A stretch of DNA of 64,000 bases from assembly GCF_000143415.4 (NCBI RefSeq), contig NW_003314293.1, positions 248,001 to 312,000 of the forward strand, written 5' to 3'. A program made the translations under genes and the position numbers. Below the pieces are notes generated by a model. That model was given only the letters and a program-made list of their open reading frames with translations. It was not told where the DNA came from and did no database searches. Position 1 is the stretch's first letter; every line of letters starts with the position of its first letter. Source of the stretch: Selaginella moellendorffii (Eukaryota; Plantae; Lycopodiophyta). Positions 29,939-60,948 of the stretch are shown one piece after another.

Positions 29939-30813
29939 ATGTCTCCCGCGGCACTCTCGCTCGATCGCGCCAAGCTCCAGCACCGGCTCATGATCACCGC
30001 CAGCGCCAAGAAAGAAGCCAATGCATAAGGTACGTGTGCATGGCCTTGATTCTAAAAGGTGACCAATGTCTCGCGCAGGAAAGGAATGTGGGTGGCGATG
30101 GATCCCTGGAGAAAGCCCCACACAAGTCTTTGGTGGCAGCCCCAAGAACTCTCATGGCGAGGACCTGGGCAACCCACTCTTCTACAGCCACCACGGTAAC
30201 GTGGACCGGACGTGGAACGTGTGGAAGACTGAAAAGCGGAAACGAGGACATCACGGATCCCAACACCAAGTTCCTCTTCTTCGATGAGAACCAGAACCTC
30301 GTTCGCGTCAAGGTGAAAGATTGCATCGGCAACGAGCAAGCGTATGGCCGTGGCTTGAAGTTGATCCAGCTGCTTCGTTGGTTCCTGGAGCTACTGCTAT
30401 GGCGGCCGAGTATCCACTCGTGAAATCCTGGGAGCCTGTCAAAGTTGGAGCGGGCCCACTGACGATCACGGTGGCGCAGCCCAAAGGCAGCGCTCGGGAC
30501 GAAATCCTGGTCCTGGAAGAGATGGAGATTGGGATGCACAAACACCGCCTTCAACGGGTTCATCAATCTCCCTGAGGCCAACGAGAGCACCACGGTCGTT
30601 GAGTACGCTGAGTACGTTGGCTCCTTCAACAACATCCCCACTTCATGCCCGGGATGACCGAGTCGAGCACCCGGACGCCCGCTTCTCCATCAAGGAGAAC
30701 GTCGAGATCTTGGGCTTGAAGGACACGGACAAGATCGTTGTCACTCTGGTGCCGCGGGGGGAGGACAAGGAGAGAGTCTTCACGTTCAAGGGGGCCAGCA
30801 TCCAGGACGCTTG
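29939..30813 (+). pseudogene. Polyphenol oxidase pseudogene (copy 3); most of exon 1 deleted, intron remnant retained
   Basis: Jumps from aaagaagccaatgca directly to taaggtacgtgtgcatgg (loss of CuA); frameshifts in exon 2. Confidence 0.92.
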
Positions 30814-30982
30814 ATTATCGTTGGAGCTCTAAGCCTGTGCTGTTTGATTTGATTTGCTTTGCTTTCCTGTGTATTGGAAAAAGAAAACCAGAAAACCAGC
30901 TGACATTGTAAGAAGGAAATCGCAATGGTGTTACTTGATGTTTCAATAACCAATGTGAAGCTGGCGGAAGCTCTCTACTGCA

Positions 30983-32247
30983 TCAGGATGACGATGTCTT
31001 GTAGATCCAACTGTCTAGGCAGTATCCTACCAAAAATGCTCCGGCTAAGTCGCCAACGGCCAGACCTGGTCGAACACGCACAACGAAAGGAATGTAGCTG
31101 GAAGCGAAGAAAAGGAAGCACTCACCAATCCATGTCCCCGTGGAAGGCTTTATTAGCACAGCCCCACACCCGGCTCCAATCGATGCACACGTTAGCGATG
31201 CCACTGCCTTTAAGGAGTTCCCAGCTGTTCTTCGTGCCAAGCTGTGGAGGACGTCTATCTCTTTCTTGTTCCCTTTGGCGCGGCCCGGGTTTTGCCTGTG
31301 AATGTAGATAACTCTCCCGGATCTGTAAATATCAAGAACTTCTTGGACCAGGCAACTCGCTCCAACTCCGAGAGCATGCGCTAAGAAAAAAGAAGACCAA
31401 AGTAAAATCGCAGCTGCTTAGAAAAACTGTGTCTAAACCTCGGAAGGTTGTTTTCGCGACACCCGTGAATAATTCGATCTTCGTGATGTGTCTTCTGGCC
31501 TTTCTCACGGCAGACTTTGGAACGTCTGCAAGATAAAAACGGGTTAGAACGAGAGCAAAGAAGCTCAGACGCAAACCTTTTAAAAGCTTCCAAGCAGTCC
31601 GGGCGGAGACGACTTGCTCAACAATGCGCTCCAAAACTCGCCTCACAGTGATTACAGAAACCTGTGCTTAGAGAACAACAACAGGAAAAGAAAAACATAA
31701 GCTCTCAGGCAAAGAAAAAGAAAGAAGATAGTTTACCTCGCGGAAAGCGTGAGTCCCCGAGCGCTTGAAAGCCAGCCTGAAATCCGGAGAAGTCTCCGTG
31801 GGACGATCCTCTTCGTCGTCCTCGTCCTCCTCGACCTTCATGTACGCCTCGAGCAGCGGGAGGAAATTCACGAGCAGCGCTCGCAACCCAGTGGTGCCGA
31901 GAGCTTTCGGCCGGAACGCCGAGAAGAGCGGCTTGAGCTCGATGTCGTAAGTCTTGAACGCATATCGCTTGCTCTCCTCGGTTCCATACGTAGGCATCCA
32001 TCTCCCCAGCCAGTCGTCCTCGGACGAGTCGACTTTGGCATCGCAGAACGCCCAGTTCCTGGACAAGCGTCAGATCACGCAACCCGGCATTGAAATCTGG
32101 AAGGGCATTTCCCTAGAAGTATCGATGGAAGGTTTCTTACCTGGGAAACAGAGACGCGATCCCAGCTACCGATGAAGCGCTTAAGAGCGCGGCGGAATGC
32201 AAGGCGTTGCTCGATGAGGAGTCGAGAGCCAGCGCCAAGCCTTCCAT
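30983..32247 (-). CDS. Conserved plant protein of unknown function, multi-exon
   Basis: Spliced reading MEGLALAL...SLFPR|NWAFCD...YDIELKPLFSAF...RRVLERIV...AWKLLK|DVPKSAVRKA...KTTFR|...CASIGAGCGAVLIKPSTGTWIG|LAVGDLAG, with canonical short introns. Confidence 0.78.
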
Positions 32248-32400
32248 CGCCTAGAACGAAGAATTAGGTCACACAGACAACAAAGAACAAAGAAGCGAGT
32301 ATATTCTAGTTTTATTCTAAAGAATGGATGCCGCCGAGAGAGAGCTTCGGATCGATTGCCGCATCGTCGTGTGGGAGGAGCTGCGATCTCGCAATGCTGA

Positions 32401-32834
32401 TCAGAGGCAGATCTCGCGGAACACCGGCAGCCTGGATCTTGGAGCCATGGCGGCCGCGTTGTCGTGGAGGAGGAGCTTGGTGAGATTCATCGCCGGCGCG
32501 ACGAGAGGGGGGAGCTTGACGTCGGACAGCTTAGGCGTGGCGTGGATGAATCGGCAGCGCTTGCCGTAGGGACAGGTTCCAGCCGCGGAGAATGTCCTGC
32601 AAACCTGGATTTGAAAGATTATCGATCGATCAACGAAATATCTGTGAGAGAGGAGATCGAGGAGAGCGAGATTTCTACCTCGGTCTTGTATTTCGGATGC
32701 CGATTGACTGGCCGGAGATCTTCCTTGCCGTGAGCAAACTGGCACTTGTTGCCGTAGCGACAGGAGCCCGTCTCCTCCCACGATCGGCACAGCTCCGTCT
32801 TGTACAGCTTGCTCGCGTCAGATTCCTCGGCCAT
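32401..32834 (-). CDS. Tristetraprolin/TIS11 (ZFP36)-type tandem CCCH protein, 119 aa (exons 32834-32679, 32604-32401)
   Basis: YKTEL-CX8CX5CX3H, 18-aa linker, YKTEV-CX8CX5CX3H; C-terminal [12 protein letters not shown]. Confidence 0.92.
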
Positions 32835-33170
32835 CGCCTTGGCGATCGATCGATGGAGAGGACAGTGGAAATATTTCGAGCGCTCAAACGAGCGCTCTCC
32901 CAAGAACTCCAAGAACAATGAGAGAAAGAGAACTAAAAAGAGAAATGTGAGTAAAGCCTAGAAATCTCTCGTCCTCTCGTATTTGTACTCCCGCCAATTC
33001 CCTCTAGAAAGTTTTTAACCCCACTCATTGTCACAATGATTGCCAGGTAAGAAATCCAAAGCTTCACTAGCTTTCAAACTCAACCGTTCGCACGAATATC
33101 CCCTAAACCCCCCGTGATTATTCGCATCTTTCAACCGGCCACTGGAATATTCACCGTTAGAACCCTAAAA

Positions 33171-34259
33171 ATGCTGGTGTCTCGATTGGGCTATGGCGGG
33201 CGAGCTCTCCTCTCCAAATGCCGGCGCCTGGCGCAGGGTAAGCGCAATCTCCACACCATCGACTCCTCCGACGAAGATCGCGGCGTCGATCACACAGGCT
33301 TCACAGAGGACGACGAGGAGGAAGCGCAGGAACAGGAAGAACAAGGGCGTAGGGTAGTGATCGTGTGGGATATTACGACGAGCAAGCCGCCGGTGTCGAT
33401 GGATCCACAAGTAGCGGCGCTCCGGGTCAGGGATCTCGCCGACGCATTCGGCTTCGTGGTGGATCGATCGGCCTACGCGGAGCCCCGGATTCCAGTGACC
33501 GATGCCCGGCCCAGGACGTATTACGAGGAGAAATTCATGGCATCACAGCTCAAGCCGGTGTGGTACCAGGACGTCCCCCATCAGAGCGCCGAGGACTACG
33601 TCTACAAGTGTGGCTACTGCGGGAGAACGCTAAGCAGCCACCACTCGCTCTACAAGCACTTTAAGCAGATCCACGCCCCGGAGAGGGCCAAGCGCGTCCA
33701 CAAGCTCAACCGGATCCATCGCGGGCAGCGGCGGGACGAGTACGCTCTGGCGATGGCGGACAAGGAGCAGCGATACCGAGCGGCGCTCCGAGAGATCGTC
33801 ATGCCCAAGCTGGTCGTCAGCGATGAGCTTTGCAGCGCTCTCACGAGGGCGGGATTTCTCGTCAGGCTGGTGACCGAGAAGCCACTTCGCCATCTCTTCC
33901 TCACCGCCCAGGAGTCGGCCGTGATCAACCATCTCTGGCAGGCGGCCTGGCTCAACATTGCGTGCATCGTGCTGGTGAGCGATTCGTGCCGGTTCGGGGA
34001 TTTCATCCGGCTGGCCAGGGAGCAGCGCGGGGTGAAGTTCGTGGGGATCAGCGATGGATTGAGCGAGTTCCGGATGGGTGTGGATTTGTTTATCAGCTGG
34101 GAGGAGATTGAGCGCGGGCGGGGGTATGTGTGGGCGACCGAGGCTGCGCGGGCTTGGTTCTCGGGGCCTCGCTTGTTCGCGAAGAGATCGACGCTGCGAA
34201 AGAGGCAAAAGTATGGTGGCGGTGGCGGTGGGGGCGAGTTTGATCCCTTTCGCGAGTGA
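33171..34259 (+). CDS. Organelle-targeted C2H2 zinc finger protein with NYN/PIN-like fold
   Basis: Presequence, VVIVWDITTSKPP, CGYCG...HFKQIH finger, CIVLVSDS...F; intronless. Confidence 0.78.
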   Translation: MLVSRLGYGGRALLSKCRRLAQGKRNLHTIDSSDEDRGVDHTGFTEDDEEEAQEQEEQGRRVVIVWDITTSKPPVSMDPQVAALRVRDLADAFGFVVDRSAYAEPRIPVTDARPRTYYEEKFMASQLKPVWYQDVPHQSAEDYVYKCGYCGRTLSSHHSLYKHFKQIHAPERAKRVHKLNRIHRGQRRDEYALAMADKEQRYRAALREIVMPKLVVSDELCSALTRAGFLVRLVTEKPLRHLFLTAQESAVINHLWQAAWLNIACIVLVSDSCRFGDFIRLAREQRGVKFVGISDGLSEFRMGVDLFISWEEIERGRGYVWATEAARAWFSGPRLFAKRSTLRKRQKYGGGGGGGEFDPFRE

Positions 34260-35349
34260 GAAGAGGAGTCAAGTTACTTCGATCTGAATCGACCATTTTG
34301 TGATGTAAACAAAGCATATTCTAACTGATGCTTATCTAACGGCTTAAAGATATGTGTTTTAAATTGGAATTAATTAATTTAGAATCCAAGTATTTTAATA
34401 TATTTTAGATTATCTTTTTTATTAGTAAAAATGTTGTGATAGTCTTCTTTTTCTAACAAACTCAAATAAATTTAATAAGTTTTATTGCTCCCACTCTTGC
34501 ATCACCATTTTTTTATGATTGGAATCATGCAAATAAATTTTTATTTCCCAATAATTATATAAAACATTATTTAATATAATTTTACATTTAAATATATTCA
34601 TGTATATTCTCTATATTTACCCAAAAACAATTGCTGCAAAAAATATAATTAACTAGTTATTTTAGTTTTCTTGTTCAGCATTATGTCTACTAAAGAAAGA
34701 TATTTTAAAATTAGTAAAAAATTATATAATTAACTATATTATTTTAATTTATAAATTATTAAATTATAAAAATTTAATATTAAAAGATTTTAACCTTAAA
34801 AAAATTAACAATCAACACTATTTATATCTTGTTTATTTTGTATTTATGATTGTTTGAAAGTCCTCACAAAACTTATAATAAATTTTTGTTAAGTTTAGCA
34901 AATATATAAAATATCTATTTAGTCTATAACAGACCAAATCAATAACAATTGTTTTGTTCTTTTTACAAAGTATTTAACATTTTCAAATTGTGCTTTTCAC
35001 TCAAAAAAATAAAAATCTAAATTATTAATTTTTATAAATTGTTAAATATAGATATAAAAATTACTTGTCACGTAGCCATTAAAGACTATATAGGGTAATA
35101 AAACTTAATAAATTTATTTCTTAAAGCTACTATAGAAGTCATACATGCTTTATAGAAAAAAATATTCTACAAAAGTCAGAACCTTTTTTATTTTTATTTT
35201 TCTACTTTTAGTTTTTATATACTTTGTTGTATATTACTTTTATTATGTTTTTTAAGGTCTCTAAGTACATATGTTCCATTGAATAAAGGCTTGTTTGTTT
35301 TCCAAAACTTAGGGAGGTAACAACACTTGGCAAATTCAATCATCCTACA

Positions 35350-35600
<251 letters not shown>

Positions 35601-35639
35601 TAGCCTACCTTGGTAATACACTAATTAAAATACTATAGC

Positions 35640-37050
35640 ATAATTTGGGATTGAATTTTATCCATAGGGTTTAAAACTTAATTAATATACAATTTATCCC
35701 TAGAGGGCAGAGTTTTCTATTGAGATTATGTTTTTTCTTTTATTTTATCATTTTCCTTTTCTTTTTTAGATTTGCTATAGTTTTTTGCTAGATCTAGGAT
35801 TATATCTTTTTGAAATGTTCTTCTTTTAATCTTTATTGCATTCTCTTCTTTTGCCATACCACATTATTATTAATCAAGGAGTATGTCACTTTAGGTTGTT
35901 AATGCTATTCCATTGGATTGAATTTTTAGTGTTATAGGGTGTAATTATATTAGTGTTGCTTTAGTCTTTGATATGTTGTTGTCTTTAGCTTTTGGAAGAC
36001 ATGATTACATAAGTTCTCTTGTTGTTGGTGTTTTATCCCATCTCTTATTGATGTGAAATATGATAGTGACATCAATTGGAGAGTTATAGATGATATAGTT
36101 TAGTTCTTGGAGAATGTTCAAGGATTAAGTTTATGAAAAGATGATATGTACAAACTCAAATGGATTCTAGATTATTATAAGAAGACTAATTATTATAAAT
36201 ATAACTTTGAAGATGAGTTGAAGATTTCACAATCCTTCAATTTGCCATTTAATGCTTTCTTTTTGCCTTACCAGCTGTATTGAACCGTATGGCAATAAAG
36301 AGAGAATGTCCATAAGGATTGACAGACATTTTACATTTTTCCAATTTTTTAAAAAATTTTATATCTATTATTTCTTCCTTATTTACAATATTTCCTTTTT
36401 TTAACATGTTAATCATTTGTGACTTTTATAACTTTCATTCTCAATCCAATGTTAAACTAAGTGTTTTCTATCATACTTATATTACGTGTGAAGTTTGAGA
36501 ATCTTACTTTTACTTCTTTGGCAAAATCTTTGATTAGTTCCTATGTTGAGTATGCCTCTATTCCAAGATTGGACCACTTTTGCTAGAATTTTAGTTTAAG
36601 TGTATATCCCTAATTATTAATGCTGTTAAGAGCCTTTGCTATATTATTATTACTAAAGACTTTATGTGTTCCTTGGAGAATATGGGCATTTTTATTAATT
36701 TTTCTATTTCAAGTGTTGAATGGTATATTGAGAAGGTTGAGTGATTTGAATCTTTTACTTATACTATAATTATGCCCTATAATACCAAAAGCTTGATCCA
36801 ACATACTCTGTGGCATGGCAAAAGAAGAAAATGTAATAGCTATAATCCTAAACTTAGAGAAAAGTTAATATAAATCTAGATTTAAAAGAGAAAGAAATAA
36901 ATAAAAATAAAAGCATGATCCCAAACACTAGAACAAAACATTGCTAAAAATCTCCGCCCTCCTAACAAAAATTGCAATAGTTCTCTCTTCCACTAATGTG
37001 AGTGTTTAGTATAATATTAATTAGGGTTTACAGACCAAATTAAGTCCTCA
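35640..37050. mobile_element. Degenerate non-autonomous DNA transposon with long (~250 bp) terminal inverted repeats
   Basis: 35640-35890 is a diverged reverse complement of 36800-37050 (for example ttctcttcttttgccataccaca vs tgtggcatggcaaaagaagaaaa; gagggcagag vs ctccgccctc). Ends and TSD not resolved. Confidence 0.5.
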
Positions 37051-38371
37051 ATAAGGTAATATATAATTTTATATATTTATAGACCCTACAATAAAAAACT
37101 AAAAATCTTAAAATTTATAATATATATTATTTATGCGGGGAAAACATTCTTGGACATCCTTGTGGACAAGTCCTTGAAAGAAAAATCTCTCAGCCTTTCA
37201 CCATCCATTTCAATTTACTTAAAGGTTTATAAATTATAAATATGTTTATAATTTGTAAACATCAGTAAATTTTGTGGTGGCAGCATCTTACACCCCACCA
37301 CAATATTTGTAGCATTTTTACTACTAATTACTGTAAACTAATATAGTCGTAGTACAAAACTGCTTAGGCTATATAACTAAAGTATATTCCTATTATGTAT
37401 GAATACCTAAAAAATAAACTTAAAAACAAGATTTTAGTGATCACAACAAAGTTGAAGATACATTCTAATTTTAATAAATATAAAGTAAACTATAATTACT
37501 GTAAATGAGTATATTTTGATTTTATTATATAGAATAAGTAATGCGCTCATTCAAATTTATATTTAAATTTTTCTAATGTGCATTCATAAAAAAGTTATAA
37601 CTTTTTTTAACCCCTTCTACATTTCTAAGTTGGAGTTGGCTTAGTTTCTGTGAAGTAGCCAGTAGCCAATCCACCAAAACTTGCTACATAATTTAATCAA
37701 CATGTGCAGCATAGGAGTGTTACTAGGCACTCCACAACCTCGCAGTGCCGCTCTGAAACATCCTTACCTCGGTGTGCATCTGCAGAGGTGTTTGATCGGC
37801 TTCCTTTTTGGGATGAGAATGCTGCTATGGCTTCCTTGCCCAACAAAATTCTATAGTCAGTTCAAGATCTCTCCTGCATGGTTGCCAAAGGCTGGGACGC
37901 TCTCAAGAACGTTTTGTTTTTGGTTTTATGTTGAATTTCATCTCCTAAAACCTTTCTTACCTCAACTTATAGTCTTGTTTATATTTTGGCGGGAGGAACT
38001 CTTGAACACAGGTGTTTGGTGTACGAGTTCTATATCACAGATTAATATATTAACGAGAGATTTCTAAGCTCCAGGCGCAAATTTCTGCTCAAGATTTCCA
38101 TAGCGACTTCTTATTTCTCCCTTGTAAAAAGGAATCACTTCTTTATTAAGGATAAGATTTTTATTGTATGAAATATCTCTTTTTGAATCATCTCACGTAA
38201 GGATTTCTTTTTCCATCTGATTGTATATGTAAGATTTCCTCCTTTTTACAATCTTGTAAATTCCTATGATTCTTATATACATGTAGTTACAAAGTCATTT
38301 ATTCGCCCTCTTTTCAAAATTTCACGTAAATAAGTGAAAATAAGTACTTAAAACTTCTGCTTTCGTCTCTA

Positions 38372-40771: not shown

Positions 40772-42625
40772 ATGCGAGGATGGAGACGATGGAGCCGAGA
40801 TCTCGGTTGTGTCGCGCTGGAAGCTTTCCCACAGAGCAGGAAGAGCGGCGGCGCTGCCGCATTGTCGCCGCCAGCGTCGGATCTCCTCGGTGTCCTCAGG
40901 CAAGGGCTTCTCCAGGGGAAGCGCTGGAAGGAGATTGCCGCGGCTTACCAGGGGGCGATCGACCCGCAAATCGCCGGCCAGGTACTCAAGAATGTGTGGG
41001 ACATCCGCCTGGCCTGCTGCGTGTTCTTCTGGGCTAGACGAGAGAAGCAGTGCGTCCACACGCTGTGGAGCTACCAGTGTTTCCTGGAGGCGCTGCTTCG
41101 ATCCAGGGGAGGCTCGCTCGTCATCCGGCACTACGTCGAGATGGTCAAAGCGGGGATTGGGCACGACGAGTATGGATTTTGCCTCGCGCTCGCGGGGATT
41201 TGCGAGACTGGATCGTGGTTCCAGGCGTTTAAAAAGCTCAAGAACAGGACCATCTTTGGGAAGCCACTGAGCTCCAGCATGTTTAACGTGGTCTTGGAGG
41301 GAGCTTGCAAGCGAGAGCGATTGAGAGGAGCTGCCGATATCCTGCGGTACATGACGAGCGTGGCGATGGTTTCTCCGGACGTTTTGAGCTACAGGATCGT
41401 GATCGAGGCTTTTGGTGCTGGGCATTGGATCCAGCAAGTGGAAACTTGTTTCCGGGACATGGTGGAGCGTGGTATCGAGCCGGACGCTGGCATTTACGAG
41501 GCTTTGGTGGATGCTTATAGCGGAGTTTACAGGCAGGAGGAAGCATGCAAGGCTTTTAGCTCGATGCTCGAGCGCGGATGGAGGCCGAGCTCTGACGCTT
41601 ACTCGGTTCTTTTGCGGTGCTGCCTCAAGAACTGGGATGGAGTTTCCGGCTACAAGCTCTTCCGAGAGATGGAAGGTGTTGGCTACGAGCTGACGGGAAC
41701 TCTTTACCAGGAGATGATCCATGGCTTTGTCAACTCGAGGATGTTTAGCGAGGCACGGGCTCTCACCAAGGAGATGGTCTCAAAAGGATTTAAGCCGTCT
41801 CCCAGCGGCTACTCGGCTCTCATCCTGGCATTCGCCAGCCCGGCACGGGTGAACGAATCATGGGAAGTTTTCCAGGAGCTTCTCCAGCAATGTGGGAACG
41901 TCCTTGACCGGGAAACTTACTCGGCGTTTGTGACGAAGCTGGCAAAAATGGATCGAGCAGCCGAGGCAGTGAGGGCCTACGAGGGAATGACTGAGTCGTG
42001 CGATCGCAGGCCGGATGAGAAAACGCTCCAGGAACTGGTGGGATGCTTGTGTAGAACTGGCAGCGTGGATCTAGCGCAGTGGCTGATCAACCAAGTCGTG
42101 CACGAGTTCAAGAACATCGTTCCCAGCGTGGAGACTTTCAACATGGTGCTATCCGAGTACTGCTGCTTTGGGCCGAGCTACGGCAATCTGAGGTCCCTGG
42201 AGATCAAAAAGGCGATGGAGCTGCTGGACGAGATGGTGAAGCTGGGAAGGCGGCCGACTGTCAACTCTTTCCAGATCGCCGTGCATGGGCTTTGCAAGGC
42301 GGGGCGAGCTTTCGACGCGTACAAGCTCTTCCTCACTATCCGGGACTTCGATCTAGCTCCTGACGCTGCGACGAGCAAGACGGTGATCATGGGGCTGTGT
42401 AGCATTGGCAGGATTGTGGAAGCCGAGCTCGTGTTTGATCATCTTTTATCGGATCGAAGGGAGGTCAAGGAGAGCAGCTTGGTGGTGTCCCAGGTTTATA
42501 AGGTGATTGTGGATGCCAGGTGTAGTGATTCAAGGAAGCTCCAGAGGAAAGGAAGGAGATGGTGGAATGAATCCAGTGTAAGTTTAGAGATCGATTTTAC
42601 TGAAAATAGTTGCTTGGGATGGTAG
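40772..42625 (+). CDS. P-class PPR protein, intronless
   Basis: Tandem 35-aa repeats (PDVLSYRIVI, PDAGIYEALV, PTVNSFQIAVHGLCKAG) after a basic presequence. Confidence 0.9.
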   Translation: MRGWRRWSRDLGCVALEAFPQSRKSGGAAALSPPASDLLGVLRQGLLQGKRWKEIAAAYQGAIDPQIAGQVLKNVWDIRLACCVFFWARREKQCVHTLWSYQCFLEALLRSRGGSLVIRHYVEMVKAGIGHDEYGFCLALAGICETGSWFQAFKKLKNRTIFGKPLSSSMFNVVLEGACKRERLRGAADILRYMTSVAMVSPDVLSYRIVIEAFGAGHWIQQVETCFRDMVERGIEPDAGIYEALVDAYSGVYRQEEACKAFSSMLERGWRPSSDAYSVLLRCCLKNWDGVSGYKLFREMEGVGYELTGTLYQEMIHGFVNSRMFSEARALTKEMVSKGFKPSPSGYSALILAFASPARVNESWEVFQELLQQCGNVLDRETYSAFVTKLAKMDRAAEAVRAYEGMTESCDRRPDEKTLQELVGCLCRTGSVDLAQWLINQVVHEFKNIVPSVETFNMVLSEYCCFGPSYGNLRSLEIKKAMELLDEMVKLGRRPTVNSFQIAVHGLCKAGRAFDAYKLFLTIRDFDLAPDAATSKTVIMGLCSIGRIVEAELVFDHLLSDRREVKESSLVVSQVYKVIVDARCSDSRKLQRKGRRWWNESSVSLEIDFTENSCLGW

Positions 42626-43179
42626 AAGAGTACTTTAAACACTAACCGATTCTAGCTTCTAATTCCCTCATATAAAAGTATGGATTTCTATATATAATGA
42701 CTATAAGTTAGGTAGAGACCACGAAACCACGACCACACACCTATGTAACGTAAATCACTAAGCCATATAAGCATCAGGAAACTAAGGAAAACTAATGGAT
42801 TAATTGCAACTTCATTTGCAACTGCAAAATGTTTGAACTAATGAGGATAGAAGTAAATTATATCTTATATCATGTCAAAAGCTTGATATGAGCCTCTAGC
42901 AACATGCTTTATCGACATCATAACATGGTAGAAGAAGGGAATGAATGTAATTATATCTGGCAAAAAGCAAGATTTAATGAGGGAATCAGAGAAGAATAAT
43001 CTAGAAAGGGAATAGCTGGGGCAAGTTGGAAGCTTTATGTGATAGTTAAATTTGCTATCTAATTTTCTTTCTCTGCATTTTCATCTATCTTTCTCAGCTT
43101 CTTCTTTCCCTTTATCTTTTTTTTCCTAATGCGTTAATCACTTCTAGCTTATAAGTTATAGTTAAGTGCTTTCAATCCC

Positions 43180-43870
43180 TCACCTCAAATTTTTTGCTTT
43201 CTCATGACTCAATATACATTCTCCATGTCAAGTTCTCCATAACCCAATATGCATCTGCTAACCTATTTGCTCTGATGAATCCATATTGAGGAGATTTGCA
43301 AAACCAATCATTAAGCTGTCATAAGCTACAACCACATCTAGCCCACAATTCTTCTCTATCATCTTCTCAAGGATTTTCTTCAACTTGTAAATGTAAATAA
43401 GTCATAAGTGTTTTAGCATGAAGTATATGGCTTTTTCCCAGCTTTATTGACCCAGGTAATTTTGGTAAAGAGTTGTTTATAGCATCTATTAGCTGTATGA
43501 GGGAAGTTCAAAAGTAGCTTTGTTAATATCCTTATTGACAGGGGTTTTTGATAATTTTGTGGTTGCAAGTATAGTTTGACAAGCTGAACTAATGGTGCAA
43601 CAGTTAGGAGAATCATAGACTATAGAGTTTGTTCAAGGTAACCAAAACACTGATGAGGTACTTTGACAATCAAGAGTTGAAATAAAGACTTGGAAAGTGG
43701 ACATAGATTTCATTGTTTTGGACATAACAGAATTTGACGTGATCTTTGGGATGGTTGATTCAATTGGTTTGTGGTCACTTTGTATAGATAAAATAGGAAC
43801 CTGGTGATATTGGCAAATGCAAATATCATATATTAGGACCCGAAAATGTGCCAAAGGTAAGTTGACCAAA
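43180..43870 (-). mobile_element. Possible highly decayed retroelement integrase remnant
   Basis: Stop-riddled frames with only weak integrase-like character, set among LTR debris. Confidence 0.25.
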
Positions 43871-44269
43871 GTAAGTAAATTAGCATAGGTTTAGATAAGT
43901 TGACCAAGCATAAGGAGCTATGCTTGACTCCTCGAGGGGATGTCGAATCTGTAAGCATATTCTACAGAGGTTGAATTCAAGTCCCAAGCCTTTACTAGGG
44001 CAAGGTGAGATGAGGGGTATAGAGATATTTATATTTCATTGTTATGGGCTCTTAGTCGGGGAGGCTAATTTAGACACACTGCTAAATGGGGGGATGCCCC
44101 TTAAAGCATAGTCAACAAGTCATGGGATTAAATAGAAATGTTCGATGTGGGTATCAAACTTCTTTTATGGGTGGTGGAGTTATAAAGAACTAACTCCCTG
44201 AGGTGTCATAGGCTAAAAGATCCCTGAAATCATGATTGGAATCATAAAAAGTTCATCAAATGAGACTAA

Positions 44270-44440
44270 GTATGAGATTGACTCCAAGACCGAGTTTGAG
44301 ACTGAGTTTGAGACCAAATTCGAGATCGAGTCCAAGACCAAATCCGAGATCCAAGATTGGGTCTGAGACTAAGTCTGAGATTGAGTCTGAGGTCGAATTT
44401 GAAATCGAGTCCAAGATTGAGTTTAAGACCGAGTCCAAAT
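44270..44440. repeat. Degenerate 6/12-bp tandem repeat (gagtcc/aagacc); a shorter reverse copy lies near 48240-48285
   Basis: Visible periodicity; produces low-complexity ORFs on both strands. Confidence 0.85.
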
Positions 44441-44486
44441 ACTAATATAAATCATGGATTGAAAGCCCACAACAATTGTCTTCCAA

Positions 44487-45130
44487 GGGGGGTTCCAAAA
44501 GTATAGTAAGGATAGTGAGGTCCAAAACTCAATTTTAAGAACTCTCTAATGGTGATTAGGGATTAATGGCCTTGGGTGGGAGTGAGTATAGATTGGGTGG
44601 TGCCAAGGCACTCTTGAAAAGGAAATCAACTATGGTGGTCTTAGCTTATGTGGAATGGTGCCCCACTTGAGTACTATATAGCTCATTAGTCTTCATTTCT
44701 TCCTAGAGGCTTCCCTTTGGGATGGAAGTGGGGGAGTAAGAGTACTCATAAAAAGTTACTAGGCCATAGTGTTTTTCCCTAATGCCCCGAAGTAAAAAAT
44801 GCACTTAAGGCTTGGGATTTAGAAGGTCCCATAATCAAGTCTTATTGTACTTAAGGATGTTAGAAACTTAAAAGCATGGTGTGTTTAGCTGTTTGTACCT
44901 ATAAGGAGTGTAGTCAAATTTTAAGTTCAATCTAACATGAGGAGGGGGATTGGGAGAGAATTTGGGAATCCATAGATGGATGGCTAACACCCCATTACTT
45001 GTGTAGTGAGTAGTTAAATTTAAATAAGACCAAGTAGGAGCTAATACAATATATAAAAACTTTGGCAAGGGAACTTAACTAAAGCCAAAGTAAAGATGGT
45101 TAAATAAACAAAGTAATTTAGCAAATTGGA
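44487..45130 (+). mobile_element. Decayed LTR of the same gypsy family as 62752-63470, opposite orientation
   Basis: Reverse-complement similarity, for example gcttgggatttagaaggtccca vs tgggaccctctaaatcccaagc. Confidence 0.75.
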
Positions 45131-45555
45131 AAATAAAAATTTATGGCTTATAAATAGGCGTCAGATTGGTTTCAATCTAGACCACTCAAATTAATATGCA
45201 CATCACTATATTTTTATTAATAAGCCACTTTAAATAATTATATTTAAAATAAAGTTTATAAGCTTGTAAATATGTATATCTACATAGAAAATTACTGTAT
45301 CTAAGAAACATAAATCCCTAATTGATATGCCAGTTTGTGGGTTTGATACAACGTATATATACATTATCAATATCCCTTAGAGATTAGTACAAAAAGTACC
45401 CATAGTGCTATTTTTTTATTGTTATTCTTATGCTACCTTCAGCCTAGCAATGCTCTCCACCCTCACACAAGAGGGCTGCTATGGTCATCTCCTTATATCT
45501 CCTAGCCTTGCCTCTTTTTCCATGGTGTTTAGTGGCCGTCACATCCATTTGATTC

Positions 45556-45737
45556 CTCTTTTGTATACCCCACCATAGCAAGGGATCTAGTGTTGTTGCC
45601 AAACTTCAAGTGTCTCTCTTTTACCATGCTCTTGCAGCATCATCTCTTTGTATACCCCACCATAGCAAGGGATCTAGTGTTGTTGCCAAGCTTCAAGTGT
45701 CTCTCTTTTACCATGCTCTTGCAGCATCATCTCTTTG
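45556..45737. repeat. Two-copy tandem duplication, unit about 88 bp
   Basis: tgtatacccc(c)accatagcaagggatctagtgttgttgccaa...gcagcatcatctctttg occurs twice. Confidence 0.95.
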
Positions 45738-45860
45738 AATCAAATTGCTACCAACATGAGGCTCTATCTATTTGCCATAATTGCCAATGTTTGTGGGTTT
45801 GAGTACAATGTCCACCTATAATCATGGTTGACTTCTTGTGTGCATCAAGTGTGACTAGTA

Positions 45861-46438
45861 TGTAAGCGACTTGAGTTTAAACTTCCCGGGAGGTCACCCA
45901 GCTCAGTACTATTCAAACCCAAAGACACTTAACCCCAAATATCCCAAAACCCTTAATTGATTAGAAAAGGGGGTGCACTCTTGTTTATGGGCCCTTTCCC
46001 TCTATATTTGAACCCCATGTATCGTCTCTCAAATCGTTCTCTTTGGTTGCCTACAATCCACCACACTTCCCTGCAAGTTCATGCCCTCGTGAACGGAAGC
46101 TGAGAGCCCCGCTCTCTTGACACCCTACCCCTTAGGTCGAGCCCAGCAGGAGGAAACTAGACCAGCCAGATGTCAATCAACATGTGGTGTGATTCCCTTA
46201 GCCAACTAACAGAGTCGAACTTGAGACCCTCTCTGATACCAAATGTAAGCGACTTGAGTTTAGACTTCCCAGGAGGTCACCCAGCCCAGTACTATTCAAA
46301 CCCAAAGACACTTAACCCCAAATATCCCAAGACCCTTAACCGATTGGAAAAGGGGGTGCACTCTTGTTCATGGGCCCTTTCCCTCTATATTTGAACCCCA
46401 TGGATCATCTCTCAAATCGTTCTCTTTGGTTGCTTATA
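45861..46438 (-). mobile_element. Complete Cassandra-type TRIM retrotransposon (LTRs 45861-46055 and 46244-46438, 5S rRNA-like core)
   Basis: 195-bp LTRs with TG...CA ends (last one mutated to TA), TSD TAGTA on both sides, PBS tggtatcagag (tRNA-iMet) at 46231-46241, PPT gggaagtgtggtggat, 188-bp non-coding interior, 5S A/C-box sequence in each LTR. Confidence 0.93.
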
Positions 46439-46899
46439 TAGTATTCATAAATCAACTGCTAAGTGTCCTGTATTTATGTGAATTTTCTGCTTCAAGACAA
46501 TCTACATCATATTTTAAGTTTGATATATGCTTTTTGCTATATATGATGTATGCATAATGAGAAGTATGTGTAAATTGGGTGGGCAACTATAACAAGAAAT
46601 AAACAGTGTTGGAGAGAATAGTTGAATGAATAGATTATGATTGTGAGTGATCTACAATGATGGACATGGAAAATGGAGTGGAATGATATAGTAAGACCCT
46701 TGAAAATGAAGTGAAAAATGCATGAGCTTTCAGATGAGAGGAGTTGATACCACCTTGAGGTGAAAATCCAGGCTCATGCTTTATGGTATCATATGCTGGA
46801 AGAGAAAAGAGAGGTAAATGTCACCTATGATATTATAATATCACCATTTCTTTTAAGAGCTTGTTTACTTTTCTAATGAGTAACTTTGAGTTAGGGACT

Positions 46900-48340
46900 A
46901 GATCATGTACTTTAATTTTGACTTCACTCAACCTAATGGCTATATTAACTCTAACCTTCTTCAATTAAGAACATTTTTGTAAGAAGTGCCCCACTTCTTC
47001 ACAATTGTAGCATATGTTGTTTCCTACACTATTACCAAACTTGATTTTTTTATTAATGGGTTTGTCCCTTTTCACTTGACTCCCCCACATACTTGCTCTC
47101 TGGCCATCAGATCTTCTGAAACCCTGAGGATTCCTTCTTAGAAAAACTTTTCTTGAATTTCCCTTTAGTATATACCCATTTGGTTTAGCTCCTTTGTTAA
47201 ATATAGACTCCAACTTTGTTGTGTTCCTTTTTTGTATGTTATTATTGAAATGCATCTTAATAAGTGAATCCAATACTTCATTGTAGTTGGTTGGGTTCGA
47301 ATGCATCACCTCGCCTTGAGCCCAAGTTTATAAGCCTAATATGAAGGCATGGAACACATCTATATCTCCCATATTTATGACAAAGATCCTTTAAGTCAAA
47401 TGCATTTATATACTCTTGAATGATTTTTGTCTGCTTTAGCTTACTCAACTCATCTTTTGGGTATAGAGTAGCATTTAGAGAATATAAGTTGCATAGATCT
47501 TCATCTTCATTACTTCCCAAATGGCTATTGGTCCTTCATTAGACTTTATTATTTTCCACTAAGATTTAGCATTATCTATTAGTTATGGTTTTGCATATAG
47601 GACGTTTTTGAGCTTAGTAGCCATAATATTTAGAAATAATCTTCCATATTATAAAATTAATCTTGCACCACTTTATAGTCATTTACTCCCTTGAAGATTG
47701 GTGGGGGCTTTAGTATATGTTTGAGAACTTCTTGAGGAACTAACTTTACCTTAGTTTGTTTGACTTTGTTTGGTTTTGCCTTAATCCCCACTAAAATGTT
47801 TGTATCTTTTGTACTATCAACATTTGCAGTCTTTTGCTTTTTCTTCCATATCTTGTCATGCTTTAACTTACGTATAAGAGTGTTTAGTAAAGCATTAGTC
47901 TGTGCCAATTCTCCTTTTAAAGCGTCTAATTAAACCTTAGATAACCGAACCCCACCATTAAACTCCTATTTAGAAGTTTCCTCACTATAATGTTCCTTAT
48001 GCAAAGATTCCTCAACTATAACTTTTTGTTTGACCTCTTGTTTGAGAAAATTTTGTCTTTGCCTTGGTTCACTTACACTCTACCTTAGCCCCCCCCCCCC
48101 CCCCAAGTTAGATTGGACTTAAGTTTTAGCTACACTCCTTATAGGCACAAAAACTTAAGTGGGGCACCATTCTATATGAGCTGAGAATGATAACAACGAT
48201 TGTTGTGGGCTTTCACCCCATGACCTATATTAGTATAAAGATTTGGTCTTGAACTTGGTCTCAAAGTTGGTCTCGGACTTGGTTTTATTTAATAAACTTC
48301 TTATTATTCCAATCATGATTTTAAGGATCCTTTAGCCTAC
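46900..48340 (-). mobile_element. Decayed Ty3/gypsy gag (zinc knuckle) with LTR remnants
   Basis: CYNCEEVGHFLQKC knuckle; LAQTNALL..L..KLK and KPPP.FK shared with the gag at 61922-62692. Confidence 0.85.
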
Positions 48341-48402
48341 TTGGGGAGTTGATTTGTTACACTATTATCCTTTCCTTTTAGAAGGATGGAAAACATTTAA
48401 GG

Positions 48403-48564
48403 TGTAAATTCCTGAATTTAGACTTAAGAGGTTACTAAAGACACTTAACCCTAAATATCCCAAACCAATTTAAAAAGGGGTGCACTTTTATTTTATAGGC
48501 TCTTTCCCTTTATATTTAAACCCTTATGGATTATATTTCAAATTGTTCTTTTTGGTTGCTTATA
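48403..48564 (-). mobile_element. Old solo LTR of the Cassandra-type element
   Basis: Collinear with the LTRs above (aaagacacttaaccc.aaatatccc, ggggtgcact, ttggttgcttata); flanked by taagg/caagg; 5S C-box region largely deleted. Confidence 0.8.
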
Positions 48565-48599
48565 CAAGGTTCTGGACGGGCTAGGATTTGGAGGAACAT

Positions 48600-51450
48600 T
48601 AGGAGGAAGCATTAATAGATTTGTAAGTGGTGTTAGTTGTTCCTAATCCCTTTGTACAAAGTGTTTTAATTGCTGCACATGCACAATTTTTAGAGAATTA
48701 GTTTGTTAGATATCATGCAAAACCTTATAAACTTGCGATCCAATTTGCTGCAGCATATAAACCGATCCCTTCCATTAAGCAAGGAGCCTTTTAGACAAAT
48801 AACATATCACAAGATTAGAAAAACAAATTAATATTAAATCATCCACTTTGTGCTATGTAGGTGGACAATGATAGAAGTTATAACACTATTGTTATCCTAT
48901 TTGTATGTAGCCCAAGTGTTTAGTAGACTCTACTCGGACAAATGGAGAATTTTATATGGTGAAGCACTAATAAAAATTTATACCCTATGATATATGTAGT
49001 CATTCTTCCCCATTCTTTATTTTGGGGAGGTCTTCTTGCAACGATTGCGGAGAATGATGACTCTAGATTGGTTGAATTTGCATCAGGCTACCTATCTCAA
49101 ACATCCCGGTTGACCAGTATTACTATTCCAATATAAATATCACTGTGCCAGGCTCCATAACGGCAAAGATAGTCCTCTCCAGAAATAAGGCTTGAAAACA
49201 TAATTCAACAATCATTTGTTGCGAAGCTCACTCACACTTCGGTTGCCTTTTTTGGATTGCAAGAGAACCAGACATTCCCAAGAATGCTTGTTAAATATTG
49301 ATCCTAAGACTTAGCATCAGTAGCTCGTGGTAATCATGAAGGTAAACTCAACTCTATTAGCAATATCAAATCATAACTATATCATACCAAAGATATAACA
49401 AATAACCATCCCAATTCGAATGCTAAAAGTTTATATACTTTTTGCAACCATCCCTTGAAAGTCCAAATAAGCATTCCACCAACCCATTTGTTTATGAATG
49501 ATAAGCACTCGTGACAGTGTGATGTATTCCCAACCAAAACATTAAAAATATAAAATGCTTCAACTATAAATATGGGACCATTATCTGAGAAAATCTACTT
49601 TAAACAGGAAAAATAGTTAGAGACAATAATGACATACTCATTGCAAAAATCAACCATAGAAGGCCCTATCAAATAAAATGCCACTAACTTAAATAGATAG
49701 AAAATTGCAATTGACTCCAACTATCCTTCTACAACACAAGGAGGAGTATTATGAGCTTGGCATCAAACACAATTATGCACATATTAGATAACATCACGTT
49801 GCATCTCCGGCCAATAGAAAGATTTATGTAACTTCTCAGTTATACACTAATGTTTTATATACCCGCCTAGAAGAAGAGAGTCATGATAAGCATAAAGAAA
49901 GTACGGAATAAATATCTAAGGTACCACTAGACATAAATGACTATCAAGATCAATCCTAACAAAATGAAGAAAGTCATCCTCATGACAATATTGAGAATGT
50001 AAATGCCAAAATAGCAAGTCATCAGCAAGTGATGTAAGCCTTTGGATTCATGGCCCAGCCTTTTAAGCCTCACAAATCTCATTAAGAGAAGGTAAATTTT
50101 GCTCTTCACCTTGTGGATACTAAACATTAAGTATAGCAATTGCCAACAGCATGGAATCCTCATTTGGAACATCCACAAGTTCTAGAACAACAAGTTTGCT
50201 AAGAATAAAAAAAAAGAGCGAAGAAGGGAGAGGAGCTTGAAAAAGAGTATTAGCATTAGCCATAAAACTCTCTAAAAGATGAATAATTAATATTTATAGC
50301 CCACTAAGCAATACAACCAACTAATTTCTTCCACTTTAATAACAAAGTAACTATAGTATAATCACTTTCTAGCAATGTTTAAGAACTATACAAATACATA
50401 TGAAACTTATCAAAAACTCTAAATTGTTGCTAAACACTTTTTCTTTGTTGTAGAGTAGTTTACCTTTGTTAGTTGTAATATATACCTAATGTTCGTAATG
50501 GGATGACACTGACCAGGCATATTCGTACTCTCTTGCATAAAGACATCCCTAAAATCGATATCCAAAGCATCCATATGCAAAATAAAAGATTAAGTATAGT
50601 GAAAATATGCCAAAACTAGAAGAATTGTCAATAACTCTTTAAGATCCATAAATTCTTGTTTATAGTCCTCAAACCAAAAAGATGATCAATAAAATGATCG
50701 AGACATTGCATGTTGCTAAAAAAGTATTGCACATTATTCATATACTTCAGAGTAAGAAACTTTAGAATAGCTATAAGTTTGTTAAGATCATAAGAAATAT
50801 AATACTCAAGATAAGTCATGTCCTTAAACCCAAATACACACTTCAACTGCTTCAACTTCAAACCAACTTCTTGCAACTGATTCAACATTTTTTAAACATC
50901 ACAGATTATATCCCCTTTGAGTGAATCAAGATATTATCAATGAAGTTAGCAGTCATTTCTGGCATATTGCAAAGAACCTCATCTATTATTTGCTGGAAAG
51001 TTGCTAAAGCATTGTTTAAAACGAACAACATCACCAAGAATTTGTACAAACCAAATGGTGTACAAAAACTAGTCCTTAGAACATTCTTAGCCATCAACAC
51101 TTATCAGTAGTGTGAGGAAGAGGATATAGATATAAGATAGTCACTTTGTTTAATGGTCAATAATTGATGTATAAGTAAATACTCTTATCAAGCTTTGTGA
51201 CAAGATGAAGTTCATACACCCAAAGACTCCATGCCTTTCGGATAACACCTTTCTCCAACATTTTCTTGATATTTACACATAAAATCTTAATTTTTTTTTA
51301 TGACGAATGACGAATAGAAATATTGATTAGACAAGCATCCCTAGTTAGAATATAATGATATGTTGCAATCTTTGCTCTAAACAACAGGTCAAATTCAAAT
51401 AAATTAGTACATTTCTTCATAAATTGGTCAACCATTGTGACTCAAAGACC
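48600..51450 (-). mobile_element. Decayed Ty3/gypsy pol (RT followed by probable RNase H and integrase)
   Basis: RTSFCTPFGLYKFLVMLFVLNNALATFQ, FIDNILIHS and LQEVGLKLKQLKCVF RT motifs; many stops downstream. Confidence 0.85.
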
Positions 51451-52949
51451 ATTAGATGGATTTGAAAAGCCAATAGAAGAGCAAGATGGAAACATAATAA
51501 TAGAGAGACAAAAGTGATGGAAGCAAAAGTAGAAGCAAATAAATGAAGAAAAATATAAGTGAAAGGAATGGAAAAAATATGTGACAAGGGGGGAAAGCTT
51601 TAAAGTCATATTTCACATAATTATGCTATAACTAATTTATACTAAAGATGAGGTCAAAAGTTTGGCTCAACATCATCTGCAACAACTGAAGCTCAAATTT
51701 GAGATTGCTCACATAGACAATTAATTTTACCTCATCTCGTACACATGCATATGCATAACTGTTAGCATAAAGAATGAAAACTAGCTTTCTCACACAATGC
51801 AGATATCAATAACGTGTGGCAATAGGCTGAGTAATAAAAGATAAACTCAAGCCTATATCAACCAATATAGAGAGAATAATAAAAGACCTTTTGTTATAAA
51901 AATAAGCTTGAAAAGTAAACACTAAATGAATTAGTGCTAAATGAACCCCTTGATGATATTTCTAAAAGAAGAATAAAGAGTCATTAATTTATTCATGCAA
52001 TGACCATCCACTACTCATGCAACTCCTCATTTCCTGGAAGAATCTCAGTGTCTAGACCTTTCATTACAACAACACTAATAAGATATTATTAACGCTAAGG
52101 CCTCCATCCAAGAATGGAGGATGCCAATTCGAAAAACATCAACAATGCCAATATGTATAGCTAACCTCATCATATGCCTAGTAGATATCATAGCCACGAC
52201 TTTGTTCTCACCTTTATCCTTGAATATGAGCAACAATAATATCAACCTCTATTAGAACATGACCATTTCCCATAAAAAAATTTAGTCTATGATATTCTTA
52301 TGGTTTTAATCACTATCTGAAGCATCTGTCCAAGTAAGATCAAGATTGCAATTGCTAATTAACTTTGAAAATGACTCTAAGAGAAAACATTATGAAGTAA
52401 TCCAAACTTTTTCCTTGTTACATCACTCATATATTGTTCTTCAAACCCCTCTCTACTCACTCAACTCTTTTTTACTTCTGTACTTCTTTCTCATTTTCCT
52501 CTTTCTTCCCTTTGTAATTTTTACTTGTACTTTTAATGTTCAACAAAATTATCATTCTCATCTAACTCGGTTTTTCCTCTTTTTTGTTCTTTTTATTCGT
52601 GTCTTTCTTCTCAAGCTACACTATTCTTCCTTCAGACTCCTAAGATTTTCTTATCTAAAACTTTTTTGATTTTTTAAATTATTTGTTCTTTTTATCTTTA
52701 TGTGTTTGCCTTATATAACTTTATTTTGCTTTATATTTAGATTAATTTTCTTTATGTATTTTAAGTTTTTATTTCAATTTCTTTTTTCTTGCTTATCACT
52801 TCTACTTGTTTTTGTAGACAAAGATATGTAATATTTTGTAAAATATTATTTGAGATCTAGATAAAGTACCAAACTTTGATATTGTTAACCTTAAACACTT
52901 AAAGCTTTTCTAAGATAAATAATATGCATTTATGTTTTCTATTATTGAT

Positions 52950-53320
52950 TTTCATAAATATATTCATAAAATCTCTTTGCTATTCAAGCATTGCTAGTGA
53001 ACGTTGTTATGTATATAATTGGCATTTAAGAATTACAAATGGTGAGTATTGTCGTGCTTCAATAGATATGTTAAATGAATGACTAGAAATCCATACAGAG
53101 TAACTTATACTCACTACTCTCAATATCTTAATTTTAATTTAGTAATAACATCACCTCAGGATATTGTAGAAACTAGAAGTGATATTATACAAGCTATAAG
53201 ATTTATACAAAGAAATTGTATTAGACGTCAAATAGGGGGTTATGTTCAACTTATAAATTGGTCTCTATATTTATCAGTACAAATAACATCATCTGAATTA
53301 AATTCATTACAAGACTAGAA
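52950..53320 (+). repeat. AT-rich dispersed repeat, second copy at about 57520-57870
   Basis: tagaaactagaagtga.att..acaagctataagatttata...aaattgtatta shared; similarity extends on both sides. Confidence 0.75.
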
Positions 53321-55824: not shown

Positions 55825-56134
55825 AATTGTAAATATGTTTCTGGCATCAGAAGTAGGGAGTCTGGCTATTATCTGAGAGGAGGAGGAGGAAGCTCTTTCG
55901 TTTGGTTCATGTAAAGTGAGCAGATTGATAAGTCCTTCAATTTAAAGGATAACTCTGCAAACTTGAAAAATGGAGAATGACACTACTGACAGCACAGGAA
56001 GATTTTGTTCATTACAGAACTTGTCTTGGAGAATATGTTGTACAAGTGAGCATGAGGTTGATGGCATTGATGGCATTCAAGTCCCAGCCACAAATACTTT
56101 AGTCGTCCTCACATGAGCATGACTAAGAGCATGC

Positions 56135-56470
56135 ATGGCTCATACTCTATGTAAAGACTCAATCTATATGGCACAAATGGGTAACAAACTCATTTTTTAT
56201 TCTAACTTTTGTGTTATTATTGATGTTAACACTGGTGCAATCATAACAACAGCTCCAAGAGAAGGTAATCTTTATTACTTGGGGAATGAACAATTTAATC
56301 TTGCCACTGCCAACAAAAACAACACTGAAATATGGCATTTAAGAGTTGGCTATTTAAGTCTTAAGAGTTTAAAAACTTTAGAAGGCATGGTGACAAGCCT
56401 AACTCTTCCTATTTCTTCCACTATCAGCTTGTGAAGCTTGTGTTTTGGGGAAGTAACATGGAAAATCTTT
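56135..56470 (+). mobile_element. Ty1/copia GAG-pre-integrase fragment
   Basis: GNLYYL...IWHLRVGYLS...GMVTSL followed in another frame by CEACVLGK. Confidence 0.85.
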
Positions 56471-58764
56471 TACAGAAGAAGAAGAAGGGTGAGCGGGTGG
56501 TCGGTGGGTCGTCACGAAAAGGGCTCCTGGTGGGTGGCCTCCCCCAAACCCTCTGCTCAATGTCGAGCCACTCTGATGCTGGGATGGACACGACGGGTGC
56601 TGCTCTCGGTCCGGGGCTGTATATGGTGATGGGTGGCAGCAGTGGCAGTGCATGATTGGTTCATATGCTATTAACCCCTTAGAGCTAATTAAAAATCAAT
56701 TCTAGATTTTCTAGAGATTACTTTACAGCTTCATATCCACTTGTTATAGGCAAAAATTCCATGAAAAAACAGTCATGCTTAGTGACAAAGAAAGAAAAGA
56801 TTTGGTGCATGATCACATGGTTGAGTTGTCTTTAGCTCTTTTTTTTAAAGGTGCATTCTTATAAATCATGTAGCCCCTTTTAATTTTGGATTTCCATTTT
56901 TCTACAATCACCATTAGCCATTCTCCTCAAACAATTGCCAAGGCCTTTTCATTAAAAGTGTCACTAGCACTAGCTTATATCCAGACACTACAACACAAGC
57001 ACATTTCTTGAGAAATCCTTGTCTAGATCTTTATATTGGATTTGTGAACTGGTCAGAAGCATCAATCATGGGTAATGCTGATATAACCACAAAATAAATT
57101 AGAACCATCAAAAATAACATTTTTATTAAGATAATTCAAACTTTTTGGGAGAAATAAGTATGCAAGGCTTAATAAGAAAAATGAATATTTTTTAATTTAT
57201 TTTTGTATTATATGTATTTACAGATGTTCTGTATTGTTTTCTAAGTTAAATTTCACTTTCTTTCGTCTTTAAACGTTCTTTATTAATATTTTTCTCTTGT
57301 AATACATATTTTATACACCTTTATTTATTAATTACATTTTTCTTTTATATCTTTATATTTTAATATATAAATAACAAGGCAGTAAGGATTAATAAAGGCT
57401 TAATTTTGTGATTTATTAGCTCAAAATTACAAGCCATTAGTGTTAAATATTATAAAAAATGATTAAAGTTTTTTAAATAATATGTGTTATAATATTATAT
57501 TACTATTTTATGTATATAATTTTATAAAAAAAATTGGTTACTTCAGCCCTGCTATAGAATCTTGTTATATAAATTGTCAATATTCAAGAATTAGTAACAG
57601 TGGATATTGTAATGTTTCAACATGTATGTTAGCTCAATGAACTAAAAATTCATTTAAAAGGTACAGAGAAATCTTAAACTTGCTTTAGTAACATTAACAA
57701 GAGCAACTTGTCATCTTATAGAAACTAGAAGTGACATTGAACAAGCTATAAGATTTATAAAAATAAATTGTATTAAAATAATTTAGAGGGATATGTTAGA
57801 CTCAGAAATCGATCATTAATTTTATCAGTAGAAATAACTCCTTTTCAATTAATTATGCTACAAGATCAAGATTTTAATTTCACATGAATACATTTCTTAT
57901 ATTAATAATTATAAACAATGACACATACTTTTATCTTATATAGGATAGTTTGTGAACTGCTAACCATTAAGTAGATTGATAGTTTTTAAAATCTTACTAT
58001 TAGTTAAATTGATAGTTTGTGAAGTCCCACAATTATGCAAATTGATAGCCTCTCTTTACTATAGTGTAGCATATGTAATGTATAACTTAATTTTTGGTAA
58101 ATAACGACAATTGATCTTTTATGGTGCAAGTGTTACGTATACTGAGGTAAAACCAAAATTATGATTCAATATTTTACAAAATTAAATATGAGTAAAGGTT
58201 TATAATATATATTTTACTAGACTAAGTTTGCATGCACTACCAAATAACTAATGATTCACATGTTTTACCTTTGACCTATTTTTAAATATTTCAATGAAAA
58301 GTGAGTCAGCTAGAATTCCTAATGACAAAAAATGTACAAATTAGAAGTTTGTGAGGCACATCCCATGCAATTAAAATAAATGCAAGTTGTTATTGCCTCA
58401 TTGTTAGAAGTTCTTGCATCTATAAGCAACATTAAATTAGACAAATAGTACTAATTTAATGAGCCTATTTAAATTTTATAATTTAATAATGCTAAACTTA
58501 TGTCATTTGTGCTAATACTAATGTTAGAAATTCTTAACAATAAAATAATTAATGAAAACATTCATTTAAGAGTTTTTGCAGCCTTCCTTCCTTTTCACTG
58601 GGAGGTGGTGGTCCATTCATGGGGCCACCATAAGCATTGCACAAACACCTATAATAGGCATCTCATTGGGCTAATTCATGACATTGATGCACTATTATGC
58701 GTCCACACTCCCATAGGTGTGTAGAAGAAGGGGGATTGGTTTTTTTTTTTAAATATATACATAG

Positions 58765-58928
<164 letters not shown>

Positions 58929-60887: not shown

Positions 60888-60948
60888 TATTAGTGCTTGT
60901 TACAACAGGAACCATTTGTATTAGTGCTTGTTACAACAGAAACCATTT
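60888..60948. repeat. 31-bp tandem duplication
   Basis: tattagtgcttgttacaacag(g/a)aaccattt occurs twice. Confidence 0.9.

Follow-up and report, generated by a model that had tools for sequence, protein, structure and literature searches.

We identified a real, intact two-exon gene of Selaginella moellendorffii on the minus strand of the window, by which we mean the whole 64,000-nucleotide stretch of DNA analysed here. The gene encodes a protein of 119 residues that belongs, by every sequence criterion, to the TTP/ZFP36/TIS11 family. We consider it probable that this is a bona fide, weakly expressed TTP-family gene whose product, reduced to two modules, acts as a decay adaptor for mRNAs with AU-rich elements (AREs) by means of a NOT1 hook. 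Reading of the sequence places the gene so that positions 32401-32834 are exactly the span of its coding sequence (CDS), from start codon to stop codon. Neither the minus strand nor the intron had been mentioned in the preliminary description of this DNA. The features of the gene are as follows.

32834-32679, minus strand: CDS of exon 1, 52 codons, with the ATG at 32834-32832; it encodes a short N-terminus, the LYKTEL lead-in, finger 1, the 18-residue linker and KYKTE.
32678-32605, minus strand: intron of 74 nt, GT..AG, phase 0, between E52 and V53; the spliced form is present in X1 contigs.
32604-32401, minus strand: CDS of exon 2, 67 codons plus the TGA at 32403-32401; it encodes finger 2, a 32-residue linker and the C-terminal motif.
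32789-32730, minus strand: zinc finger 1, CX8CX5CX3H, C16-H35, from the pattern scan, Pfam PF00642 and identity to PDB 9y10.
32601-32542, minus strand: zinc finger 2, CX8CX5CX3H, C54-H73, from the pattern scan, Pfam PF00642 and identity to PDB 9y10 residues 47-70.
32433-32404, minus strand: putative NOT1-binding-type motif, R110-L119, aligned with RLP[IV]F tails, with RRLPVFETIC of Closterium and with the contact residues of human TTP 312-326.
32316-32311, minus strand: AATAAA hexamer resembling a polyadenylation signal, by consensus match only, 84 nt past the stop; transcripts of the next gene start further downstream, at about 32268-32280.

Joining exons 1 and 2 gives the 119-residue protein. 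In the 166 nt read upstream of the start ATG there is no other ATG, and the nearest lies at about 33028. Three independent lines of evidence support the splice junction 32604|32679, namely the X1 contigs, the 119-aa model on the other haplotype and the residue numbering of PDB 9y10, which is continuous across the exon junction. Two X1 contigs of ~150 nt each, at a depth of ~6, cover 32465-32606 and 32677-32819, and both continue over the junction, indicating that the intron is really removed. Their cover ends at 32465, short of the last 21 codons and the stop. Linker residues 74-105 (32446-32541) include a hydrophobic 16-residue stretch, for which a nuclear-export-like or LxxLL-like motif would be speculation only. 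Rfam and tRNA scans of the 64-kb window were empty.

The tandem fingers place the protein in its family. Both fingers are of the form CX8CX5CX3H, and 18 residues separate H35 from C54 across the splice junction, a linker length found in 192 of the 194 finger-bearing homologues fetched. The lead-ins to the fingers are LYKTEL and KYKTEV, whose Y, K, T and E do not vary in the homologue alignment. A pattern scan of the window in any frame found no CX8CX5CX3H fingers elsewhere. The fingers, their 18-aa spacing, the YKTEL/YKTEV lead-ins and the length of 119 aa had all been given in the preliminary description and are confirmed here; so is its RLPVFREI tail, except that the protein ends not there but two residues further on. 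All homology searches were run exon by exon. Each exon passes the Pfam zf-CCCH threshold (E 1.3e-13 for exon 1 and 7.3e-9 for exon 2). After an identical chain described below, the best relatives among solved structures are TIS11d (1rgo; E 3.5e-24 with exon 1 and 7e-12 with exon 2), TTP (1m9o; 1e-23 and 1.8e-10) and C. elegans POS-1 (6nzl). The finger domain is ~69% identical to that of human TIS11d, and both fingers have the aromatic residues of CxYG (Y) and CxFxH (F); we take these aromatics to be the RNA-stacking residues of TIS11d (1RGO structure). When an AlphaFold model of exon 1 alone (pLDDT 69.7) was compared with a fold library up to 2026-04-08, the matches were weak, with 1rgo on top at Z 3.7. 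The ZFP36/TIS11 architecture proposed at the outset is thus well supported, with exact fingers, spacing and lead-ins and with 1rgo and 1m9o as the closest relatives after the identical chain. Judging from this domain identity, the tandem fingers would bind UUAUUUAUU-type AU-rich elements with high affinity.

We compared the C-terminus of the protein with the CNOT1-binding domain (CNBD) of human TTP. The human peptide that binds CNOT1(800-999) is APRRLPIFNRISVSE; its L316, I318, F319 and I322 enter the CNOT1 groove, R315 makes a salt bridge, and the F319A change weakens CNOT1 binding ~thousand-fold (PMC11939966). The Selaginella tail lies in register with this peptide, R110, L111, P112, V113, F114 and I117 being the counterparts of R315, L316, P317, I318, F319 and I322; all are identical except for Val in place of I318. 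The R-L-P-[IV]-F-x-x-[ILF] pattern of the CNBD is thus present at the extreme C-terminus. The Selaginella tail is two residues shorter than that of human TTP, and it has Glu at the position of R321, which in the human protein hydrogen-bonds Q848 of CNOT1 (PMC11939966). At the position of the regulatory S323, whose phosphorylation lowers CNOT1 affinity in mammals (PMC8180021), serine is replaced by Cys118, and Closterium has Cys there too. This replacement indicates that the phospho-serine switch is absent from the Selaginella tail; S323 is a regulatory feature and not one that defines the motif.

The same motif recurs across the family. R-L-P-[IV]-F is invariant in the aligned tails of short family members, other short members (131-173 residues), among them the Anaeramoeba 'tis11', have the motif at the C-terminus, and 27 fetched homologues carry it no more than 25 residues from the C-terminus. 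A rough estimate from amino-acid frequencies puts the chance of RLP[IV]F within the last ten residues at ~1e-5, and we therefore dismiss a chance origin. The tail had been read as a CNOT1-binding-type motif from the start, and at the level of sequence this reading is supported, the human contact residues being matched.

Together, the two modules suggest how the protein may work. The tandem fingers would bind single-stranded RNA at AU-rich elements of the UAUUUAU type in mRNA 3'UTRs, and each of them would read one UAUU half-site, as happens in TIS11d. On the RLPVFxxI helix, L111, V113, F114 and I117 would enter the hydrophobic groove in the HEAT domain of NOT1 and R110 would make the salt bridge; the hook would in this way bring CCR4-NOT to the bound mRNA, leading to poly(A) shortening and decay. 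With a linker of only 32 residues and without long disordered regions, the protein probably contacts the deadenylase through the NOT1 hook alone. The absence of such regions also implies that the NOT9, NOT-module and PABPC1 contacts of human TTP would be missing here, and the CNBD alone provides only part of the activity of human TTP (PMC12350847).

A role in decay only is not assured, because AtC3H14/15 have been reported also as DNA-binding transcriptional regulators (PMC9698766). The Selaginella protein might work mainly as these TTP-type proteins reportedly do, as a nuclear or dual regulator that recognizes DNA or other RNA motifs and uses its tail for another partner. Besides AREs, AtC3H14/15 and PdC3H17 are reported to bind DNA elements and to regulate transcription (PMC9698766, PMC11524242), and many higher plants are without the CNBD, indicating that plant members can work without it (PMC12350847). 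However, in both hTTP and PdC3H17 the transcriptional activity maps outside the fingers (PMC11524242), where the Selaginella protein has almost nothing, and the Selaginella tail closely matches the CNOT1-contact residues and is conserved as far as a zygnematophyte alga. We regard a mainly transcriptional or dual role as rather unlikely and favor the ARE-mRNA decay adaptor.

The annotation of this locus differs between the two haplotypes. On scaffold GL377597.1 (GCA_000143415.2), where the window occupies about 248001-312000, NCBI annotates one gene at 30983-32834 with a 425-residue product, fusing the finger gene with its downstream neighbor. Scaffold GL377610.1, of the sister haplotype, has in the same 434-nt span a separate gene for 119 aa, followed by a gene for 312 aa. 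The two genes that flank the finger gene are the following.

30983-32247, minus strand: downstream neighbor, six exons, 312 aa, ATG at 32247; its five introns of 51-82 nt are confirmed by RNA junctions, and it is well expressed.
33171-34256, plus strand: divergent neighbor, single exon, 362 aa, with a sub-threshold C2H2 finger match only and a depth of ~5.

Could the true product be the fused protein of 425 residues, in which the fingers continue into the 312-residue protein and the tail is spliced out? When all GT/GC-AG introns were tried by script, only 32424-32251, a GT-AG intron, gave exactly 425 residues, and read-through splicing of this kind is compatible with an RNA cover that stops short of 32401-32464. 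This splice would leave ...SRLP and remove VFREICL, cutting after RLP a conserved motif that is intact in the homologues, including that of Closterium. The RNA data also speak against it. In RNA-seq runs X9-X11 the downstream gene has a depth of 25-80 up to about 32268-32280, whereas depth is zero over 32281-33120, the finger gene included, while both neighbors are covered; no junction in these runs enters the downstream gene from upstream. The edge in depth and the absence of an upstream joint together show that the downstream gene has its own start. In X1, the depths of the two units differ ~60-fold. Moreover, an AATAAA lies between them, and on the other haplotype the annotation has two genes, for 119 and 312 aa. 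A genuine fused product is thus highly improbable, and the 425-residue model of GL377597.1 probably joins two genes falsely and so conceals the 119-residue protein together with its tail.

Such a false fusion is the likely reason that protein searches limited by length missed the 119-aa protein. A word search with the exon-2 tail among candidates of 71-226 aa gave no matches, and a word search with exon 1 in a set of 5.8 billion proteins gave no 100% match, the best being at most 88% identical. The 119-aa protein is likely hidden in a cluster represented by the fused 425-aa model, outside the length window. Because of this probable clustering, we rejected the blank word searches as a sign that the protein is absent.

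Expression of the finger gene is low or conditional in the sampled material. We likewise rejected the zero reads in X9-X11 as proof of silence, since spliced contigs are present in X1. Between the haplotypes, the CDS has 2 synonymous and 0 nonsynonymous differences, the intron is identical, and the short 3' flank has 4 SNPs and a 23-bp indel. The absence of reads in three RNA-seq runs in which both neighbors are covered might suggest a silent or decaying copy without current function. This is scarcely credible for a gene with an intact ORF, a protein that is the same in both haplotypes (all differences being synonymous), correctly spliced transcript contigs in X1 and all family-defining residues in place.

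We also noted several features of the surrounding DNA. The 312-aa neighbor has no Pfam family on record, and none was found on scanning its largest exon ORF; its transcript starts only ~30-50 bp past the AATAAA of the finger gene. The 362-aa neighbor has a haplotype mate, SELMODRAFT_420162, of 359 aa, in the same 90%-identity cluster. Over 30601-32280 and 33240-33960, about half of the RNA reads show the other base at many positions, and the X1 base at 32506 is C, the allele of the sister haplotype; both observations fit a two-haplotype assembly. Just past the 312-aa neighbor, at about 30040-30814 on the plus strand, is an annotated gene of the polyphenol-oxidase type (PPO1_DWL domain), and 30601-30720 has strong RNA reads in the opposite orientation. 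Long AT-rich blocks (26-40% GC) at 34001-38000, 42001-53000 and 56001-62000 alternate with gene-like blocks of 50-56% GC, and are probably rich in repeats or transposons.

We then asked how much of this was on record. The 70-residue chain of PDB 9y10/9y13, a 'C3H1-type domain-containing protein', is identical to residues 10-76 of the Selaginella protein (67/67). Given this identity, and since no other protein among the 5.8 billion is more than 88% identical, the chain is almost certainly the finger domain of this protein. N and A at positions 2-3 of the 9y10 chain differ from the Selaginella protein and look like a vector remnant. The structures stop at the finger domain and include neither linker nor tail. 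A literature search found no relevant paper on 9Y10/9Y13 or on a Selaginella tristetraprolin. In the wider literature, the NOT1-binding tail has been described as kept in 'primitive plants' (PMC12350847, citing Blackshear and Perera 2014), AtC3H14/15 and PtC3H17/18 as orthologues of hTTP with the same 18-residue finger spacing (PMC9698766, PMC11524242), and a published TTP tree included a spike-moss member (PMC11524242). The finding is therefore already known, through the annotation of the protein on the sister haplotype, the deposition of its domain in the PDB and published accounts of NOT1-binding tails in early-diverging plants.

Two parts of the preliminary description need adjusting in this light. 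Its remark that novelty might be partial, made with earlier plant TTP-like proteins in mind, understated the case for a protein that is annotated and has its domain in the PDB. The difference in spacing from typical angiosperm RR-TZF proteins holds, but the contrast with angiosperms was overdrawn, since AtC3H14/15 and PtC3H17/18 have TTP-type fingers with 18 residues between them. What is added here is the probable annotation error on GL377597.1 and the intron and tail common to Closterium.

Evidence on the age of the gene comes from the zygnematophyte alga Closterium sp. NIES-68, whose protein CLOM_g243 (P0139, 223 aa) is 84% identical over the exon-1 fingers. Its gene also has two exons and a single phase-0 intron between KYKTE and VCRTF, at the same site as in Selaginella.

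BQMA01001012.1, L003:1501-2277: Closterium NIES-68 orthologue, with its phase-0 intron of 105 nt at L003:1816-1920.

The Closterium tail reads RRLPVFETIC, against RLPVFREIC in Selaginella, and CLOM_g243 differs in that its N-terminus has 60 residues, its linker is longer and rich in Ser and Ala, and its chain runs on for 24 residues past the motif. The models P0052 (Closterium NIES-64) and P0004 look like read-throughs of the intron at that site. The common intron position and tail speak for an orthologue of long standing in streptophytes rather than an oddity of one lineage. Tentatively, and with more doubt than certainty, we suggest a conserved streptophyte lineage that runs from zygnematophyte algae to lycophytes and is marked by a gene of two exons with its intron at a fixed site and by an RLPVFxxIC tail; in this lineage the 119-aa protein would be a natural single-interface TTP, with fingers and NOT1 hook only and no phospho-serine switch in the hook. 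A single-interface TTP, if true, bears on the debate over multivalent contacts between TTP and CCR4-NOT. If its biology is unpublished, the protein would let one ask of a natural molecule whether a hook on its own is enough for targeted deadenylation. Being so small, it is also a handy natural construct for studying the action of the NOT1 hook in isolation. In practical terms the value is modest.

Among known systems, human TTP/ZFP36, ZFP36L1 and ZFP36L2 (1rgo, 1m9o, 4J8S) have the same two CX8CX5CX3H fingers, 18-residue linker and YKTEL-type lead-ins, and share with the Selaginella protein the C-terminal R-L-P-I/V-F-x-x-I motif. The human proteins have at least 326 residues, against 119 in Selaginella, which is without their long disordered N- and C-terminal regions and without a counterpart of the human tryptophan/NOT9 and NOT-module contacts (PMC12350847). 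The Selaginella protein further differs from human TTP in having Cys for Ser323 and Glu for R321, and its gene has an intron inside the finger domain.

In plants, AtC3H14/AtC3H15 (CDM1) and poplar PdC3H17/18/20, of CCCH subfamily IX, have the same finger spacing and lead-ins, a likeness drawn from their descriptions, and are about 300-360 residues long. AtC3H14 binds AREs (PMC9698766). The RR-TZF proteins (AtTZF1-11, OsTZF1) also have tandem CCCH fingers and are regulators associated with RNA granules. They are defined by an arginine-rich region followed by CX7-8CX5CX3H-X16-CX5CX4CX3H. A grouping with RR-TZF proteins, which would have spoken against the TTP assignment, was checked by a pattern test, and the RR-TZF pattern is absent: both Selaginella fingers are CX8CX5CX3H, the spacing is 18 residues, finger 1 has only 15 residues before it, and there is no arginine-rich region. 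Fungal Zfs1, Cth1 and Cth2 have the TTP-family finger domain in common with the Selaginella protein, but they are without the metazoan-type NOT1-binding tail (PMC8180021, PMC12350847), which the Selaginella protein has.
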